A stretch of 63,752 nucleotides of DNA, the filler included, from Pelomyxa schiedti (Eukaryota > Protista > Evosea): the NCBI GenBank assembly GCA_020536535.1. It is 7 parts of 7 records of this genome, joined end to end, with 100 filler letters (N's around TTAATTAATTAA, not from the genome) between each part and the next. Parts side by side here need not be neighbours in the genome. Positions count along the whole stretch, not along the records: positions 38,820 to 52,267 come from JAHLWZ010001194.1; 6 more parts are not named here. One strand, given 5' to 3'. A program made the position numbers and the translations under genes. This document shows, piece after piece, positions 38,820-52,267 of the stretch (position 1 is its first letter; each line of letters begins with the position of its first letter). Below the pieces are notes generated by a model that saw only the letters and a list, made by a program, of their open reading frames with translations, was not told the DNA's origin and searched no databases.

Positions 38820-39172
38820 TCAAGGTGAATGACAACAACTTGCTCGCGATGATGATGCACCAGAAGAGAGTTGGTTGCACTGAGTGGCTCATCAACCAGT
38901 TCCATGTCAAGTTGAACGAGATAACCAGACTGGCAGCCAATCACAAAATTACCTCTGTTTCAGTGGGCATGTGGAAGATGCTGATGCGTGTGTTCCCTGA
39001 AATGACAGCCTCTTTTGTGAGGGACCACTTCATGGAATGGGTGTTGGTCTCTCCACTTCACACATCTGTCACAATGAAAACCGTTGGGCTCACAAAGGCT
39101 GACGTTGACTGGTACATCAACAACAAGCCCAGCGAAAATTCAAGTGATACAAGGGGCAGCAGTGATGAATGA
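38820..39172 (+). CDS. 3' end of ankyrin-like family protein
   Basis: EWLINQFH...WKMLMRVFPEMTASFVR...SP...GLTK matches the C-terminus of 24739..27147. Confidence 0.65.
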
Positions 39173-39448
39173 AAAGAGACAGTCGCTTGGTTTTTCGGCC
39201 TGATTCATTTCCATCATCGATCACATGCACAAGCGGGTCGGGGCCACGTGTTGGGCCCTACAAGTGGTTCGATGCTGTGTTTAATGGCAACGCTCATGTG
39301 CTTTGACACATGGGTCAAAATTGACTGTGAGTCCTCTTTGTAACTAAAACTATGTTTTATTTACAAATCAACATACAGGAAGAACCTTTCACGAACGATC
39401 TGGGGCTTGTTTTTTCCCAAATCTCATCTTTGCCCTTTCGCACGGAAG

Positions 39449-42400
39449 ATGGCAGCAGCAACAAACAACAGCGCACCACGTGTTGAGCCCTTTGGGTGGC
39501 TCAACACCGCTTATTCTGGCAACGTTGACAAGCTGCGGGAGATGCTGGCTCGCGACCCCGGGCTGCTCAACTCTGTCAACAACGAACGACACCGACTGGT
39601 GTGCGAACTTCACCTGGAAGTCGGGATGGCGTGGGCGGCAGAATAAAACTTTTTTTTTTTTTTTTGTTTCTTAGTAAGTTCTCATATAATATGTTTTTTT
39701 TTTTTTCGATATATACATAGAAATTAATTCTGTTTTTGGGGCGCAGACAGCGTTGCACTTCGCCACGTGGGCAGGGGAACAACAGTGCGTTGAGTTCCTG
39801 TTGTCAATGAATATCAATGTCAATTCTCAAGTTTGTTATCGTTACTTATACTAGTCACTTACGAGCTTGCATTCTCTCACTTCACAGATTGTGTGTAAAA
39901 CCTCCCTCAATTAGAAAGCACAGCGCTTTAACTCCTCCCCTCCAGGGTAAACGTGTATGTACATCCTCATAGCTCCCAACCATATTATTGTATTCATCTG
40001 ACTTGCTTCATTTTTCACTTGATTTACTCTGTCTGTGGTGTGTTTAGTATGTGAGTATCCCCCAACCCATTTTATTGGCAATTATTCATCGATTTACTGA
40101 TTTGCTTCAATTTTCTCTATCTGTGGCGTATTTAGTCTGTGTGTATCTACCAACCTGTTTTATTGCATTTCTCATCACTCCATTCTTTGTTCTGTGGCGT
40201 CTTTAGATTGTGTGTATCCCTCAACCCCTTTTATTGCCATTATTCATCAATTTCTCCATTTCATTGCTCTGCTCTGTCTGGCAGTTAGGAAGTGCATATC
40301 CACCACTTTTAATATGTTATTCATGGATTTGTCTGACTTGCTTCAAATTCTCAATTCCTTTGCTCTGCTGTGTGTTTAGTGGGTGTGTTGTTGCATTATT
40401 CATCATGAATTGAATTGACGTGGTTCAATTTTCACTCCTTGCTTTTTTGTGTGATAAACTCAGGGAGTATGTAGCCACCAACCCTTTTATTGCTTTATTT
40501 CGTGGATTTCTCTGACTTGATTCAATTTTCATTTTATCTGATTTGATCTGTCTGTGTTTATAGATTGTGTGTATCCACCAACCTTTTTCCATTTTCTCAT
40601 AAATTTCTCTTGTTCCTTTGCTTCTGTCGTGCTTGCTATGGGGTGAAACGCGTTATTCATCAATTTCTCTGTTTCTCGTTTCGGTTTGTCTCTCTCATCC
40701 TCAGGAAGTATGATTGTTTTTTCTTCTGTTCCCCACTTATAGAGCTCTTTTTTTTTTGGATCTGTTGAATCAAAGGGTGATGTGTGTCTTCTTTTCTTTC
40801 TTTGTTGTGTTTTACACAAAACACTTAATTTTCATCTCTATCCTCTCTCAGACTGCACTTCACATTGCCTGCAAAACAGGACATGTTGAAATTGGGAAAC
40901 TACTTCTCTCCTGTGTGGGGATTGACACCAACATAAAGGTTTCTTTTCCCCATAAGAGTGTGTATCGTTGATGTGTCGTGATTTACGTGCCACGTGGGTT
41001 GGGCACAGAACAAGGATGGGAAAACAGCACTCGAGTGCTCGAAAAATGATGCAGTGCGGCAGTTGTTCCCAGCCCCATTGACGTCATCATCAACAACTGT
41101 TGATTATGTTGTTGACGAGTCAGCACCACTACAACAACTGCGACATTCTCCTGCCTCAAACAGGCCACCACCCACCTCACAACATCAAAAAGAAGAGACT
41201 GCAGAACTGAAGGCCCGAATCACACAATTGGAGGAGGAAAACGGAAGGAACCTAAAAATGATTGAAGAGGTGTGCGTTGCTGCTGTTTCTGAACAGAACT
41301 GTTTTAACTCATCTTGCAGCAAGGGTTTTTAGAATCCTTTCTCTTTGTTATTAATGTTCAAACAAGAGCTGATGGTTGAAGGAAGCAAGTACAAAGAACC
41401 TGCATATGTTTTGTGCCGAAAAAGCATCCGACCAACAAAGATTTCATGATCTCCAACACTGTTTGTGCTGCCCACTCAACATACCCTTCCCCTCAACCCA
41501 CACCGCCAACATTTTAACAACTGTCAAACAGACATGAATCATGTGATGTCACATGTTGAACAAGGAGAAGGCACGTGGTGCAACATTCTCCCTGAAAACA
41601 ACAACAACAACTGCAAGCGATCCCAAATCAGGATTGCGTTTGAGGACCTTCCCTCTTTCAATGAAATTGTGTGTGGATTCTGTCCTCTTCAAATGGTGCT
41701 TTCCGCTCTGCTCTCACTGCTTCCAGGGAAACCCCCGAAGCTAACAAACACAGGTTGTGAGTTTGGAGTTGAACCATCTCAGCAAGTAATTTTCACTGTT
41801 GTTGATGAAAACAAAACAACAACTCTGAGGAACAGCTGTTGACCGATTCATACAGAACCTTGGATGGCATTCATCAACAACAAGGAAACGGCCCCAACAA
41901 CAGAGTCGTCCAATTCCAAGTGCGAATCAAATCAACTGTGTCAATCCAAGAAAAAGATCTGAAGGTTGTTTCCACACTTGGGTCTGGAGCGTATGGAACT
42001 GTTTTCAAGTGCACCTTCGTTCACAGCACTGCAACCACTTCCTCCTCCACAACATCATCAGAAACAACAACATTTGTGGCAGTGAAAGCACTTCACGAAA
42101 TCATAAGGAGTGAGTTTAATATCACCCAGTTTCAACAGGAAGCTCTGGTGAGTGAGGAGGGAGGGAGGAGTGTTCGTTTTCTCTCTGTTTGAAACAATTC
42201 ATTCAGAAACACTCACCATCACACACACAGATTTCATCAAGTTTGAGACATCCCAACATTGTGAGATGCCTTGGAACGTGCGTCACGAGCACAGGGTCAC
42301 TCTGGATTGTCTCCGAACTCATGGAATTGAGCCTCAGGCAGCTCCTTCGTCATGTTTGTTTTGTTGCTCATCTCTCAACACTCACATTCCCACAGAAAAA

Positions 42401-43257
42401 TTTGACATTCATGGAAGTTGTTGCAGTCTCTTCAGGAATTGCGAAAGGAATGACAGCACTCCACATATTTGTTTCTTGATGACCTCTCGTTTCCCTCTTT
42501 TGTTGTTGACCAAATTTTTATGTGCCATCTACTCCCATCCCATGATTAATGACGATTCAATACAGGAGGGATTTCATGCACCGGGACCTGAACAGCTACA
42601 ATGTTCTCCTGGATTCTTGTGGAATTCCAAAGATTGCTGATTTTGGTATTTTCTTATTCCTCATGTCACAACGTTGCACAGGGTCATAATTTGAATTGCA
42701 GGAGTGTCGAGAGCTCTCCTGTCCAATGGTGGAACTGGCACCGGAACCACTGTCCCACTTCGGAGTGTAACAATTGCTGGAACACCTGTTTACCTTCCGC
42801 CGCAGATGTACAGTCGTCATTATGGAATTAAAGGTTCGGAAAATTCTCCTGCCATACTGTCCTTCGCACTGCTCACCCATCTCAAGGCGACATGTGGGAT
42901 TTTGCAGTTCTGTTGGGTGAACTTCTCAGAGGCACCCCACCAGAGGCCGTGGTTCCAAAGGCTGCCACTCAGATTCATGAGTTCATCAGAGTCCAGAGAA
43001 CTCAGCTGTCACCCCCGGAAATTGCCGGTTCGTTGTTTTGCAAGTCAAAAGTCTCTCCCTTCCCAACTGTAACTCACAACCCACACAGAGGTGGACCGGC
43101 TTTGTGACGATGCCGGAGATTATCCCGTTGCGGAGTGCCTCAGCCGGAGGAATGCAATCATTGAGGCACTGCGGTTGGACCCAGAGTTGAACAACGCGCA
43201 CCCTGCGTGCGTTGGTCAGTTCTCACTCGTTGTTGAGCTTTGCCTCTCAATCCTCGG
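39449..43257 (+). pseudogene. Ankyrin - coiled coil - ubiquitin-like - TKL kinase gene, copy A (microexon array intact; downstream part frameshifted)
   Basis: Ankyrin exons TALHFATWAG and TALHIACKTG; kinase LGSGAYGTV, VAVK, HRDLNSYN, IADFG. Compared with copy B it has frameshifting deletions at ~41375 and ~41760, and no recognisable subdomain XI (RPSF) exon. Confidence 0.6.
39888..40781 (+). other. Array of 11 phase-0 microexons (copy A)
   Basis: AG|exon|GT at ATT 39888, GGTAAACGT 39946, TAT 40048, TCT 40136, ATT 40207, GAA 40289, TGG 40380, GGA 40464, ATT 40564, GAA 40705, GGTGAT 40776. Confidence 0.75.
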
Positions 43258-44176
43258 TTCGTTATTTCCACCCCGAATTCAATTAATTAATTTTAAATTC
43301 ATGGGGAACTGGAAGCCAACAACGCAATTTAAATCAATTCCCGCCTGGCCACCCTCACAACAATCACTCATCATCATAATCGACATGCACTCGGTTGCTG
43401 AATGAAACGAAAAGAGAAAACAATAGGGTCAGGGCAGAGAACATACCTAGTTGACCCAGTGGTGTTACAGTGCCATGGATTGGATATGTGTCCACCAGAG
43501 CAAAGATCGGGACAGTGCATTGTAAGGTTCCTCGGACATCACTCGTGTGTCGTCGCACCACTACAACGCGTGTTTCATCATTTGCGCACGCTCGACATCT
43601 GCATCGGGATCGGCACCGCGTAATCGAGGAGAAGAAGGAACGTACGTAGATTATAGCGCTATAAACGAGGAGAACGTGGTGGAAAGACAGAGGGAGCAAC
43701 CTCCAGGCGACGCCACGTCAAGCAGGGCACAACCACCCTGTTATTCCTCAAGAGCTGTGAGAGATCCTGGGGAGGACATCTACCCGAAAAAGGCATCACC
43801 CACAAAGTCTGACAACTTCAATGACACGTGATGTTGTGCTGTGGGTTCACTGAATACTTAGAACGAACACGTCCGTCACTCCCTGTCACAATGGGGACCA
43901 AGGTGAAGGTGTGGCGATTACCAAGAGGCTAAATCGCAACACCGGGCGTTCTGGTGACTTCTTTCTAATCTGATGGATTTCCGGGAAAACTACCCCGAAT
44001 AACTGAGGGAGATTCAGGCGACACCTAGAACTGATTCTGGTGCCTTTATAAGGCGGGAACAACACCGTTGTAGTCACTCACTAAAGTAATAAACAACTCT
44101 TGTGTTTGTTGGAGCTTGCAAGACACGAATTTTTTTTGATCTTTGGGTGGTTCTCACCGCATTGGCCGTCAACCTC

Positions 44177-47100
44177 ATGGCAGCAGCAACAACAGCAACA
44201 GCGTCACCCACGGGGGGTCCACGCGCGGGACCCACTGAGTGGTTCAGTGCCGCGTGGAGCGGCGACACCGACGCACTGCGGCGTCTGTTGGCCGGTGACC
44301 GCGGCCTGCTAAACTCCGTTAATTACGAACGACAACGAGTGGTGTGAATGCGCTGACCAAATCTTTTTTTTTTTTTTTCCCCACACGCTTCAATAATTCC
44401 GTTTTTTTGCACACATACACCACAGACAGCGTTGCATGCAGCGACGTGGGGGGGGAAACCACGGTGTGTCGAATTCCTGCTGTCAATGAATATTGATGTC
44501 AATTCACAAGTATGCCACTGGTTTGATGTGCCTCGTCACTAACCACACTTGTATCTCTCGCTTCACAAACAGATTGTGTGTGATACTACTACTACCCATC
44601 CTGATTATAGGTTTACATTCTCTTCCCTCTAACAACCGTAAATCCAGGTGGAGCCTGTATGTACTGCCACAATCTCAATCCTTTTATTGCACAATTTTTA
44701 CTCTTTGCTGCTCTCTCTCTCTATGGCGTACTTTAGCATGTGTGTAAACCCATCCTTTTATTGCGTTGTTATTCATCGACTTCTATGACTTGCTTCAATT
44801 TTCACTCTTTGCTTTGCTCTCTCTCTCCCTGTCTTTATGGCATGCTTTAGCTTGTGTGTAAACCCACCCTTTTATTGCGTTGTTATTCATCGATTTCTAT
44901 GACTTGCTTGAATTTTCACTCTTTGCTTTGCTCTCTCTCTCTGTCTCTGTGGCATGCTTTAGTATGTGTGTAAACCCACCCTTTTATTGTGTTGTTATTC
45001 ATCGATTTGTATGACTTGCTTCAATTTTCACTCTTTGCTTTGCTCTCTCTCTCTGTTTCTATGGCATGCTTTAGCTTGTGTGTAAACCCAGTTATGGCGT
45101 TGTTATTCATCGATTTCTATGACTTGCTTCAATTTTCACTCTTTGCTTTGCTCTCTCTCTCCCTGTCTTTATGGCATGCTTTAGCTTGTGTGTAAACCCA
45201 CCCTTTTATTGCGTTGTTATTCATCGATTTCTATGACTTGCTTCAATTTTCACTCTTTGCTTTGCTCTCTGTGATAAACTCAGGGAGTGTGTAAACCCAC
45301 CCTTTTATTGTGTTGTTATTCATCGATTTGTATGACTTGCTTCAATTTTCACTCTTTGCTTTGCTCTCTCTCCCTGTCTTTATGGCATGCTTTAGTTTGT
45401 GTGTAAACCCACCCTTTTATTGCTTCAATTTTCTGTGACACTTTCTTTCTTTCTTTTTGGGCTGCCATATCTCAGGGAGTAAGTAAACACACAACCTGCC
45501 AAGCTTTTTGTTTCTAACTTTTCGGGAAATTAACTGCTTTACACTACTGGCCACCAGATTGTACATGAACTCACACCTTGATTCTTTCTTTACTTAACTC
45601 TTTTTTTTTTTTTTTTCAGGAAGTATGAGCTTGTTTTTTTTTTTTTTTTTGCATTCCTCAATGTCATCTCTACTTTTCGTGGGGGTCTCTCTGTCAAATG
45701 AAAAGGGTGATGTATGTGAATGTCCTTTGTGTTTCCTTTCCTTTGTCTGTTGTTTGACACACTTAAAACTTAATTTTCATCTTTCTCTCTCTCAGACCGC
45801 ACTTCACATTGCCTCCAGAAGGGGAAATCCTGAAATTGTGAAACAACTTCTGTCTTGTGTGGGCACTGGCACTCACATCAAGGTGTGGTGTTTTTCCCTG
45901 TGTTGCTTGTTATGTGTTGTAATTTTCCTGTTGGAAAAGAACAAAGAGGGAAAAACAGCTGTTGAGTACTCCAAGAATGATGAAGTCCGGCAACTGTTCC
46001 AATCTGTGTGTTGCAAAATCCCCGCTGCCACAGCAACAAAAACAATAGCAACACAGACAGTCTCCACCACTCCCAAAATAGCACAACAACAACCCCACAA
46101 TCTTGTTGCCCAAGACTTGCTGGAGTATTCATTCTCATTGCCTCAAAACAACCCACCACCCTCCACTGCAAACAAGTCATCATTATCTTCATCACTCACC
46201 TCATCACAACCACAATCAATGCAAGCACCACAAACAGTTGGGAGACAAGGAAGAACCTCCTGGGAAATCGAGGCAAAACAGCAGAAGAGTTGAGACAAAT
46301 TCCCCCAACCCCCCTCCCTGTTCCTAAAACCAAATTCAAATGTTGTGCACTTCAAAAAGATGAGATCACAGAACTGAAGGCACAAATCACACAATTGGAG
46401 GATGAAAATTCAAAGAACCTGAAGCTTCTCCATGAAGAAAGAAAATGCAGACAAGTCGACCAAGAAAGGTTTCATGAACTGCAACGGAACTGTTTGTGCC
46501 CCCCCACTCCTCCCCTTTCCTTTTTTTTTGTTTTTCTGACACCTGTTTTGGATGGACATCAAGGGAAACAGAATTCAGAAGTGTGTGTTTGTTGTTTGTC
46601 TTGCAATAATAATAAAAAATAATCTCTTTTGACAACACATCATCTATCAAGATGGAACTGCAAAGGTTGCAAGAAAAAACCGTGTTGGACATGACTGCAA
46701 AGAACAAGGGTTTGTCAACACCTTTTCTCCTCCTCCATTTTCTCTTTCTTCTTGTTTCGAACTCAACTGATTGTGCACTCATTGGTCATCCCTTTTTTTT
46801 CCCTTTTTACAAAAGCAGAGCTCATGGAACTGGAGGCACACATCACAACATTGGAGGAAGAAAGTACAAAGAACCTGAAGATCTTTTGTGACGAAAGAGC
46901 ACTTGAACAACAAAGATTTCGTGATCTCCAACACTGTTTGTGTTCAGTCAATACACCCCCTTTCTCAACCACACACACGATACACACACACGCGATATAT
47001 ACACCATCAATCTAACTGTAAAGCCAGACACCACTCACGTGATGTCACATGTTGAGCAAGGAGAAGGGATGTGGTGCAACATTCTCCCTGAAAATAGCAA

Positions 47101-49277
47101 CGTAAACACCAACAGCAACAACTGCAAGCAATCACAAGTCAGGATTGCGTTTGAGGATCTTCCCTCTTTCGAAGAAATTGTGTGTGGCTCCTGTTCTCTT
47201 CAAATGGTGCTCTTTCCCCTCCCTTGAATCGAATTCCCCTCTCTTTTTCCTTGAAACAAACCAAACGAACAAACGCAGGTTGTGAAACTTATCATCTCCA
47301 GGAAGTTTGGGGTTGAACCAACTCAACAAGTCATTTTCATTGTTGGTTCAGATGAACGCTCGGAGGAGGTGTTGACTGATCCATTCAGAACCTTGGAAGA
47401 AATTCAACAACAACGACAACAAGGCAACAGCGTCAACAGCATCAGCACAAACGGAGTTGTTGTGTCAATACAAGTGCGAATCAAATCAAGCATGACAATA
47501 CAAGAGAAAGACTTGAAAGTTGTTTCCACACTTGGATCTGGATCGTATGGAACTGTTTTCAAGTGCTCCTTCCTCCACAACAACACTGCAGCAGCAACGT
47601 CTTCCTCCTCCTCCACAACATCATCAGAAACAACAACATTTGTGGCAGTAAAAGCACTTCACGAAATAATAAGGAGTGAATTTAACATCAACCAATTTCA
47701 GCAGGAAGCTCTGGTGAGCGACTTTCGTTTTCTCTGTCACTGATCTTGAAATGCACACAATTCATTCATTGAAACTCACCATCACACACACAGATTTCAT
47801 CGAGGTTGAGACATCCCAACATTGTGAGATGCCTTGGAACGTGCGTCACGAGCACAGGGTCACTCTGGATCGTCTCCGAACTCATGGAATTGAGCCTCAG
47901 GCAGCTCCTTCATCATGTTTGTTGGGCTCACACTCAATTGGCAAAATATAAATATCGCTATTTACTTTGTTGGGCTCACACACACTTCACAGAAAAAGTT
48001 GACATTCACAGAAGTTGTTGCAGTCTCTTCAGGGATTGCAAAAGGAATGACAGCTCTCCACATGTTTGTTTGTTTCCTTCTTTCTTGATGTTCCTCTCGG
48101 TTCCCTCTTTTTCTTTGTTGTTGACCAGATTTTTTTTATGTGCCATCTTCTCCCATCCCATGATTGATGAACGATTCAACACAGGAGGAATTTCATGCAC
48201 CGGGACCTGAGCAGCAACAATGTTCTCTTGGATTCTTGCGGAATTCCAAAGATTGCTGATTTTGGTATTTTCTTATTTTTATTCCTCAACAATGTTTCAC
48301 GGTGCCATCATAATTTAATAACTTGTGTGTGAATTGAAGGAGTGTCGAGAGCTCTCCCAAGCAATGGTGCTGCCACTGCACTTCGGACTTTCACGAATGG
48401 GGCTGGAACACCAGTTTACCTGTCACCGCAGATGCGCACTCGTCACTACGGAATTAAAGGTTCGGAAAATTGAATTGTTCAAACCATACCAACCACCCTT
48501 AAACACTGATCATCCACCATCTCAAGGTGACATGTGGGAGTTTGCAGTTTTGTTGAGTGAACTTCTCAGAGGCTCCACACCGGAAGCCATTGTTCCAAAG
48601 GCTGCCACTCAGATTCATGAGTTCATTCGAGTCCAGAAAACTCAGCTGGCACCCCCGGAAATTGCCGGTTCGTTGTTGTGCAAAAGTCTCTCCCTTCTCA
48701 ACTGTAACTCACAACCACACACCCTCACAGAGGTGAACCGGCTTTGCACTGATGCTGGGGATTATCCCGTTGTGGAGTGCCTCATCCGGAGGAATGCAAT
48801 CATTGAGGCACTGCGGTTGGACCCAGAGTTGAACAACACGCACCCTACGTGCGTTGGCCAGTTCTCACTTGTTGTTGAGTCTTGCCTCTCAATCCTTGGT
48901 TCGTTATTTCCCCCCTCCACCACCGCTCCATTTTAAATAACAACTGCGTAAAATGGACAAGAATATACAAGTGGGTCTATCGAAATGGCAGTTAAACTTA
49001 AGTTAATATAATAATATGCCTTCCACCCGACTCACCAACACACACACGCACAGAGATCAACCGGCCATCGTTTCCGGTGATTGAGAGAATGCTGATGACA
49101 TGTGCCGAGATCGTGTTCGCCAATTCTCGCAACAACCCCACCGCAACAACAACCGCCACCACCAACGCTCCCATAATCGACAACCGCGACGTGGCCGCGC
49201 ACATCACCACGTGCCTCGCAAACATGGCCGCATCGTTCCCTGGCCGCAGCAACAACAACCAAACAACATCTTCGTAA
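44177..49277 (+). CDS. Ankyrin - coiled coil - ubiquitin-like - TKL kinase gene, copy B (apparently intact)
   Basis: Ankyrin exons (TALHAATWGG, TALHIASRRG, NKEGKTAVEY), repeated coiled-coil exons, Ub-like VKLIISRKFGVEPTQQVIF...LTDPFRTL, kinase LGSGSYGTV/VAVK/HPNIV/HRDLSSNN/IADFG/GTPVYLSPQ/DMWEF, and terminal exon EINRPSFPVIE. Confidence 0.8.
44573..45711 (+). other. Array of 13 phase-0 microexons (copy B)
   Basis: AG|exon|GT at ATT 44573, GTGGAGCCT 44648, CAT 44737, CTT 44851, TAT 44963, CTT 45075, CTT 45185, GGA 45284, TTT 45396, GGA 45476, ATT 45558, GAA 45620, GGTGAT 45706. Confidence 0.8.
44690..45430 (+). repeat. Tandem ~100-114 bp repeat (about 7 units); each unit is one intron plus one 3-nt exon
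   Basis: Unit: gtgtgtaaacccacccttttattgcgttgttattcatcgatttctatgacttgcttcaattttcactctttgctttgctctc...ggcatgctttag-NNN. Confidence 0.9.
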
Positions 49278-50904: not shown

Positions 50905-51262
50905 CCGCATTTTTTGTCTATGTGCAAAAGGGTGGTATCCCTTGTCTTGGTCTTCCACAACCTGATAAATGTATGATTATGTGAGAGATGCTCCTTTCTT
51001 TTTCAGAAAGTTCAGTTTTTTTTTTTGTTTTCCTACATTGTGCCCAGGTTGACTGTGAACAGTGAAACAAATGCAAAAAAGTTGTTACAATGCAACTAAT
51101 GGGATTGTTGTTGTTGAGCCATCTGAGCTTGGAGGAACTGGGCACGGTTCTCCAGAACTCTTATTTTCCTTGTTGTTGATAATATTAGTCTGTTTGTTGG
51201 GTGTATTTATTGGATGGTGAGTGTGATTGGCGTTTTGGTTTTAGGTTTTCGTTTTTTCGGCG

Positions 51263-52267
51263 TTACCTGTCTTTGGCGGCAACGTGATTTGAAAGGTAGT
51301 CCCTGATAAATAGCCTCAGCTTTGCGTTCCTCTTCTTGAGCTTATCTATCTTCAGGTTGGCTTCAGCCAATTGGCCGGCAAGGTCAATGCTATCCAGAAT
51401 CTGATTGTGGCCGTCCAACTGTGCCGGTTCTTGTTGGAATGATGATGAGGCTGTGTGCGTTGTTGACTCCGGTGTCACTTCTTCCCTTGGGCTTGTTGTT
51501 GATTTTGCGGATTTTTTTGTTGTTGATTTTGCCGTGATTGGTGAGTGGGAGTCGAGTGCGGGGTCTTCCTCTTTTGTGCACATAAGCTCATCTGTTGTGG
51601 ATGCTTGTTGATTGGTGTTGCGGTACTTTACATTAGAATTTGGTTGGTCTTTGTGCCGGGTGTTCAGGGGTGATTTGGCTGTTTTGCTTGTGTGTGGTGT
51701 TGATACTTTGGTTGATTTTGAGCCGGTTAATGCCGGTTGGGTGTTTGCTTTTTTTGAGTGCGTGTGGGATGTGCGTCCCTTGTGCTGCGGTGATTGCGGT
51801 TGAGAGGTGTTTGGTTCTGATTCCTGAAGAGGATGTGACTCTTGGTCGTATGCATTATTATTGGCCCTGTCTTGCGGCAGCTCTTGTATTTGCGGAGATG
51901 GAAGCAGTTGGTGAGGCTGGTCAGGTGAAAAGGTTGTTGAGAAGGGAGGTTGTTGGGATGGTTTTACATTGCCAAGTTGGTCCGGCAGTTGGACACCTGT
52001 GTGGATTGGGTTGGTTGGTCCAATAAGATTAAGTTATGTGATACCAGAGAATCTCATTTGGTCTGTTGTATTGGAAAACATTGTGTTGCCAAGACTTGGC
52101 GGTGGTGAACTTTGCCCAATCCTGCAACTCGTTAGGTGCTTGCTTGTTGTTCATTTGCGAGCAAACACACATGGGTGGACAGACGGACAGAAATGTAGAG
52201 ATGCTTGTCAGAACTGTCAACTGCTGAGAAAAGGCATCCACCTCAACTTGGGCGGAATTTAGTGCCT
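51263..52267 (-). CDS. Partial low-complexity protein with C-terminal coiled coil
   Basis: T/S/Q/N-rich minus-strand reading ends LAGQLAEANLKIDKLKKRNAKLRLFIRDYL. 5' end lost at the linker; exon structure unresolved. Confidence 0.35.

Follow-up and report, generated by a model that had tools for sequence, protein, structure and literature searches.

Is the loop between two ankyrin repeats of a Pelomyxa schiedti kinase gene put together from exons of one codon each, and does this arrangement diversify the loop? Pelomyxa schiedti is a giant anaerobic amoeba. In the 63,752-nt stretch of its genome analysed here (the window, to which all coordinates without a locus prefix refer), a first-pass annotation had read 13 AG|exon|GT units inside one such gene, gene B, as in-frame microexons from which a variable loop could be assembled by skipping or inclusion. 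The part that holds gene B is identical to contig JAHLWZ010001194.1 of assembly GCA_020536535.1, and a search with a kinase exon of the gene matched P. schiedti proteins. The assembly was made from amplified single cells; the genes have 7.4 introns on average, were annotated with Augustus, PASA and EVM, and are accompanied by five public single-cell RNA libraries (PMC8887013).

Structure of gene B and its predicted microexon array

Gene B lies on the plus strand. Exon 1 (44177..44341), which is absent from the NCBI model, carries the start codon and a degenerate first ankyrin repeat and is conserved in all family members. Exon 2 (44426..44509; Pfam Ank, E = 1e-5) encodes an ankyrin repeat that ends in NSQ at a phase-0 donor, and exon 3 (45796..45882; Pfam Ank, E = 4e-6) a repeat that starts with TALH. 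The remainder (45940..49277) encodes a capping repeat, a low-complexity linker, a coiled coil, a ubiquitin-like-looking segment (called by eye, with no Pfam confirmation) and a TKL-type kinase, so that the protein consists of three ankyrin repeats and a cap followed by linker, coiled coil and kinase. The glycine loop, VAVK, HRD and DFG motifs are intact and the domain qualifies as an ankyrin-repeat TKL-like kinase, in agreement with the signalling kinase proposed earlier. NCBI model P0043 (775 aa) maps exactly onto the 45940..49277 part; it begins within the last array intron and omits exons 1 and 2 and the array. An apparent frameshift near 46290 proved to be an ordinary phase-1 intron.

Between exons 2 and 3 lies array B (44510..45795, plus strand), with 13 units and 14 introns of 59–111 nt. 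We recovered all 13 units at the places and with the codons first described; each is a multiple of 3 nt, none is a stop, and included together they would form a 16-aa loop. They do not all play the same part, as variation is limited to the seven in the middle and the other six resemble a fixed framework. The array opens with an Ile unit (44573..44575), whose intron is closest to that at the equivalent position elsewhere, and a 9-nt unit (44648..44656) that reads VEP in gene B and is G-x-P-like in paralogues. A 112-bp tandem repeat of intron plus codon (44711..45423) then carries the variable H, L, Y, L, L, G and F at 44737, 44851, 44963, 45075, 45185, 45284 and 45396, respectively. The framework resumes with Gly (45476..45478, with a GTAAGT donor), Ile (45558..45560), Glu (45620..45622) and a 6-nt Gly-Asp unit (45706..45711), all on the plus strand. 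This last unit, annotated as a 6-nt exon in three NCBI paralogue models, supplies the G-x that precedes TALH. The idea that G-x is required there was too strict, since the first ankyrin junction of gene B does without it; the association itself holds, as Gly-Asp closes 13 of 13 arrays found.

Upstream of gene B lies a tandem paralogue of the same layout, gene A (39449..43300, plus strand, 3′ end approximate), with an array of its own that had previously gone unnoticed (39831..40851, plus strand, 11 units, I-GKR-Y-S-I-E-W-G-I-E-GD). At 42467 gene A has AT in place of the kinase GT donor of gene B, near 41370 it lacks 23 nt that are present in B, and its NCBI annotation is broken up into two models; its kinase part may be decaying. 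Positions 38820-39312 hold the 3′ end of a 96.7% copy of a 904-aa ankyrin gene from locus L006, followed by a decayed exon-1 remnant. On the minus strand at 51096-52057, where the sequence is strongly skewed, NCBI calls a 271-aa gene that has no Pfam hit.

Arrays at the same ankyrin junction in paralogous genes

The loci of paralogous gene models revealed 12 more arrays at the equivalent ankyrin junction, that of gene A among them. In total there are at least 13 arrays (12 complete, one cut at the locus edge), distributed over at least 7 different contigs, and two decayed copies; the count covers the paralogue loci fetched and is a lower bound. Every fetched paralogue locus has an array at the TALH junction except L016, where it is absent. 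All NCBI models checked begin or end at the array, several paralogue models starting abruptly at TALH or just upstream. Clusters of the motif on the minus strand of L015 turned out to be reverse complements of the array repeat.

We called 184 units, 4 to 30 per gene, by hand curation of motif lists, with one or two candidates, such as a 6-nt unit of array C, omitted; repeat copy numbers may be mis-assembled. All 184 units are 3, 6 or 9 nt long; 161 are a single codon, and 23 different codons occur. Ten long arrays share a common plan: Ile, a 9-nt unit, 4–24 variable one-codon repeats, Gly, Ile, Glu and Gly-Asp. The first Ile is kept in eight of the ten (Met once, Leu once) and Glu in nine (Ala once), while the 9-nt unit, Gly and the second Ile are present in all. 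Their middles are YSIEW (A), HLYLLGF (B), ENGDYIE, NDYYGYGFGIQHRLYG, YMIW, TYRCYRRGHY, a 24-unit run, GLFDGLLFNLYLD, GYYGN and a 16-unit run, and are rich in Tyr, Gly, Asp, Leu and Ile. Two arrays are short, D-H-F-GD and N-N-N-A-GD. The consensus ankyrin turn is D-x-x-G-x, and the shortest array spells exactly such a canonical turn, D-H-F-G-D. This array is the clearest sequence evidence for the units being read as protein.

Framework introns are 56–71% alike and mostly nearest to the equivalent position in other arrays, whereas 62 of 82 middle introns are nearest to their own array. Thus, the frame is old and the middle locally homogenised. The longest array (L007:4027-6895, 30 units) contains higher-order repeats spanning several units, which point to segmental duplication inside the array.

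Arrays at L009:59-717 and L009:9662-10665 belong to ankyrin genes whose tails consist of SAM, alone or together with U-box, indicating that the ankyrin module is not tied to the kinase. In other fusions the coiled-coil and kinase module follows ankyrin, LRR, MORN, Sel1 or ubiquitin domains, while a segment related to it occurs in a caspase-family (PF00656) protein; together these make up a modular, immune-like repertoire in P. schiedti. Loci L003 and L006 are collinear contigs, either haplotypes or segmental duplicates, between which whole kinase genes are present or absent, a pattern resembling polymorphic immune loci.

Splice signals of the units

Array B has 15 YAG sites in its 1286 nt, and 13 of them are called acceptors. 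There are 11 occurrences of YAG-N3-GT[AG], whereas 1000 dinucleotide shuffles gave 0.33 on average and 3 at most, a test that overstates significance because the middle units sit in the 112-bp tandem repeat and are not independent; weak by itself, it leaves the case for the array B units to be carried by the paralogues. Across arrays the motif reaches a density of 8.9 per kb; in background sequence, sampled over 327 kb, the density is 0.66 per kb.

GTGTGT offers potential donors at +3, +5 and +7 after the acceptor. When scored with a donor matrix built from 180 introns of P. schiedti gene models, the +3 donor was best in 156 of 161 one-codon units, while +5 and +7 scored negative on average; the donors of array units agree with the genome consensus. 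Array introns measure 44–161 nt (median 88; gene-model introns, median 73). Of the 107 middle units, 79 have a TAG acceptor, compared with 7 of 70 framework sites and 12 of 180 model introns, counts whose significance is overstated as repeat units are not independent. Database searches with the spliced models, run exon by exon, returned no protein with the spliced loop; a search for short transcript-derived fragments found none, and the four ankyrin genes from a metagenome scan were intronless, unrelated and free of arrays.

Codon-level variation

The 161 one-codon units include no stop (5.1 expected from position frequencies) and no codon starting with GT (18 expected), numbers whose significance, for stops and Val alike, is again overstated by the dependence between repeats; Gly is GGA in 24 of 24 cases and never GGT. 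Codons with GT first, and GGT, would create a competing donor at or beside the acceptor, which presumably accounts for their absence. NNT makes up 82 of 107 middle codons, and with T in the third position substitutions at positions 1 and 2 cannot yield a stop.

In four young arrays, pairwise diversity, calculated per column rather than with a codon model, is 0.57–0.75 at position 1, 0.40–0.68 at position 2 and about 0 at position 3. Intron columns of the same arrays average 0.05–0.07, so that codon positions 1 and 2 are roughly 10 times more variable than the introns repeated with them. In array H, positions 1 and 2 each exceed all 97 intron columns, and 6 of 7 unit pairs with introns within 3% of each other encode different residues. 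Gene B and gene G (L006), which lie on collinear contigs, are 96% identical, yet their middles differ in unit number and sequence and read HLYLLGF and TYRCYRRGHY. A local mutational hot spot might conceivably be the source of this hypervariability, but it would have to leave untouched the AG next to the codon, its third base and the donor.

AG-N3-GT is kept at all true unit ends of ten intact arrays. In a broken copy it has been lost at 2 of 7 unit ends together with the 9-nt unit, though these numbers are small. Family copies at L009:7100-8600 and L006:7400-8213 are broken and have lost array splice sites; they make useful neutral controls.

The comparison of 13 arrays with their conserved framework, the D-x-x-G-x turn, the lack of stops, the hypervariable positions 1 and 2 and the decay in broken copies strongly support the microexon reading and the diversification of the loop that had been suggested from gene B alone. 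The common plan, tandem turnover and codon hypervariability of the arrays are established at the DNA level. Judging by these patterns, the units are very probably spliced in as exons, and it is highly probable, to a slightly lesser degree, that one-codon microexons diversify a candidate binding loop through tandem gain and loss combined with selection.

The loop within a probably cytosolic ankyrin protein

Gene B encodes no signal peptide and no convincing transmembrane helix (maximum 19-residue hydropathy of exon 1, 0.03). Array proteins look cytosolic rather than like surface receptors, and we have accordingly replaced the former label 'receptor' with 'intracellular sensor'.

An intronless ankyrin-kinase sister family (P0003, P0005, P0031, P0035-P0038, P0040 and P0041, on L001, L002 and other loci) carries the same kinase and has, at a comparable junction before a TALH repeat, a contiguous loop of 4–13 aa that varies in length and sequence. 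The long loops of P0003 and P0005 were considered as microexon products and found to be contiguous DNA. One intronless sister protein is predicted to adopt an ankyrin fold (mean pLDDT 93); the loop lies between helix pairs in this model, which matches DARPins. Thus, long variable loops are tolerated at such a site, and the P. schiedti genome appears to reach them by two routes.

How the loop might be diversified

We propose an explanation with two layers, which we consider somewhat more likely than not: microexons would spell an ankyrin β-turn finger, and DNA turnover along with exon skipping would diversify it. Phase-0 microexons would encode the finger that links ankyrin repeat 2 to ankyrin repeat 3 in cytosolic sensors, most with TKL kinase tails and some with SAM or other tails. 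An originally short D-x-x-G-x turn would have been split into one-codon exons, and in most members a constant frame (Ile, G-x-P ... Gly, Ile, Glu, Gly-Asp) would have come to surround a tandem run of intron plus codon. In the first layer, which the DNA shows, tandem duplication or unequal exchange adds and removes units and makes them alike without ever breaking the frame, with selection pushing codon positions 1 and 2 apart while the fixed third T excludes stops. This DNA-level route was missing from the initial proposal, which had relied on splicing; the idea of a diversified loop stands and is extended by it.

In the second layer, a spliceosome that meets near-identical short introns with uncommon TAG acceptors would skip some middle units, and each gene would yield ordered subsets of its own codons. 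Variable skipping of middle units is, in our assessment, probable. It is favoured by the near-identical introns, the TAG-rich middle acceptors, loops of up to 33 aa under full inclusion and the precedent of schistosome micro-exon genes (MEGs) and brown-algal ROCO genes. Frame neutrality, once put forward in its favour, is no argument for skipping, being needed equally for gain and loss at the DNA level, and the TAG acceptors may simply have been inherited from one founder unit. As upper bounds, distinct ordered subsets number 80 middles in gene B (4476 if all 13 units were skippable) and about 7–7.5 million in array H, the longest.

The loop would probably be CDR3-like or LoopDARPin-like, and we speculate that it binds intracellular ligands and switches the kinase; proteins of cytosolic endosymbionts, parasites or viruses are equally speculative candidates. 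Since two of the three endosymbionts of P. schiedti are unenclosed in its cytosol (PMC10579272), a role in intracellular sensing can reasonably be guessed at, though not more than that. The broadest version, an amoeba CDR3-like repertoire on a natural ankyrin scaffold, made of ordered one-codon-exon subsets between framework microexons, with from tens up to millions of different loops for each gene, and wired to kinases for sensing intracellular microbes, is tentative and falls a little short of an even chance.

The strongest competitor to two-layer diversification is that all microexons are always included, each gene making one long loop (13–33 aa) and diversity existing only between copies or haplotypes. 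The whole of the DNA evidence is compatible with it: the donors fit the genome consensus, the introns are of normal size, and the intronless sister family has fixed loops of up to 13 aa. We nonetheless regard it as less likely, since hydrophobic-rich loops of 22–33 aa far exceed the lengths in the sister family, perfect inclusion of 3-nt exons over up to 31 near-identical introns would seem demanding, and MEG and ROCO arrays do undergo skipping. A Dscam-like mutually exclusive choice, with one middle codon per transcript and a 10-aa loop differing in a single residue, would suit a fixed frame around a tandem cluster of equivalent units and an array size free to vary from 4 to 24. It is very improbable: every intron is too long for steric exclusion, neither consistent docking-selector pairing nor excess RNA structure was found when looked for, and identical codons repeated in one array would contribute nothing to a one-of-N choice. 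Least probable of all is that the units are not exons, being instead a tandem repeat within an intron or sites of recursive splicing, removed whole, or an artefact of whole-genome amplification or assembly. Amplified single cells do underlie the assembly (PMC8887013), and AG-N3-GT can multiply by tandem repetition alone. Yet this reading leaves unexplained the conservation of framework units outside the repeat, the array that spells the canonical D-H-F-G-D, hypervariability confined to positions 1 and 2, the absence of stops and decay confined to broken copies, and mis-assembly could alter copy numbers but not a structure seen on at least 7 contigs.

Implications

Even if skipping does not occur, the arrays are a gene design that lets a binding loop evolve residue by residue through copying of intron plus codon under a stop-proof codon scheme. 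Up to 30 consecutive 3-nt exons provide a sharp test case for microexon definition by the spliceosome. If skipping is real, an endosymbiont-bearing protist (PMC10579272) would possess a splicing-based CDR3-like repertoire, which would be relevant to the recognition of partners and intruders by single cells. The arrays also expose a blind spot of annotation, the NCBI models checked breaking at them. The literature searched, which is incomplete, holds no precedent for codon-by-codon assembly of a loop.

Comparison with known systems

Schistosome MEGs and SmVAL6 share with the P. schiedti arrays runs of tiny symmetrical (3n) exons, fast evolution and a tendency to be missed by automatic annotation. 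MEGs vary by exon skipping, and SmVAL6 joins a microexon run to a folded domain (PMC4015677, PMC4350168, PMC10526429). Likewise, 184 of 184 units called in P. schiedti are predicted 3n exons. However, the usual MEG exon is 15 nt long and MEG introns span 0.1–5 kb, while the amoeba units are one codon, tandemly repeated, with introns of about 88 nt. A MEG protein is small and secreted, carries a signal peptide and is encoded mostly by microexons; in gene B they amount to 48 nt of about 2.6 kb of coding sequence, exon 1 lacks a signal peptide and the product is cytosolic-looking. MEGs appear restricted to flatworms and their skipping is established, whereas the P. schiedti run fills one ankyrin-kinase loop in an amoeba and is a candidate for skipping.

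[quoted passage not shown] Diversifying selection, judged from column diversity, and exon gain and loss are found in the P. schiedti arrays too. In ROCO genes, a 72-nt phase-2 exon encodes a whole LRR, while a P. schiedti unit is one residue within one ankyrin loop, and the family has a TKL kinase or SAM tail in place of a ROC-COR or NB-ARC domain.

Arthropod Dscam1 also uses tandem arrays of alternative exons to diversify a binding surface. Its exons are long, and RNA docking makes the choice among them mutually exclusive. Neither docking nor steric exclusion was found in the P. schiedti arrays. Diversity-generating retroelements vary positions 1 and 2 of AAY codons, with a pyrimidine in the third position avoiding stops. 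The P. schiedti arrays have the same variation of positions 1 and 2 beside a fixed third pyrimidine as a parallel in design only: retroelement changes are adenine-specific while those in P. schiedti involve all four bases, and no reverse transcriptase among the called genes of the array loci and no template repeat were seen. Antibody CDR-H3 is made by V(D)J recombination of DNA; the amoeba loops would be spelled by units of intron plus codon. Engineered LoopDARPins place a long variable loop on an ankyrin scaffold (PMC9257619), as is proposed for P. schiedti. A single 3-nt microexon is spliced and regulated in Drosophila homothorax (micro-Ex8, PMC7392893); it is solitary and conserved, in contrast to arrays of up to 30 hypervariable units.

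In the incomplete literature searched, we found no description of a binding loop filled by an array of one-codon exons. The arrays work like MEG/SmVAL6 runs and brown-algal exon-shuffled receptors while lacking defining features of both, and they also lack those of Dscam clusters and diversity-generating retroelements. We regard them as a new form of diversification by microexons that comes close to a category of its own.
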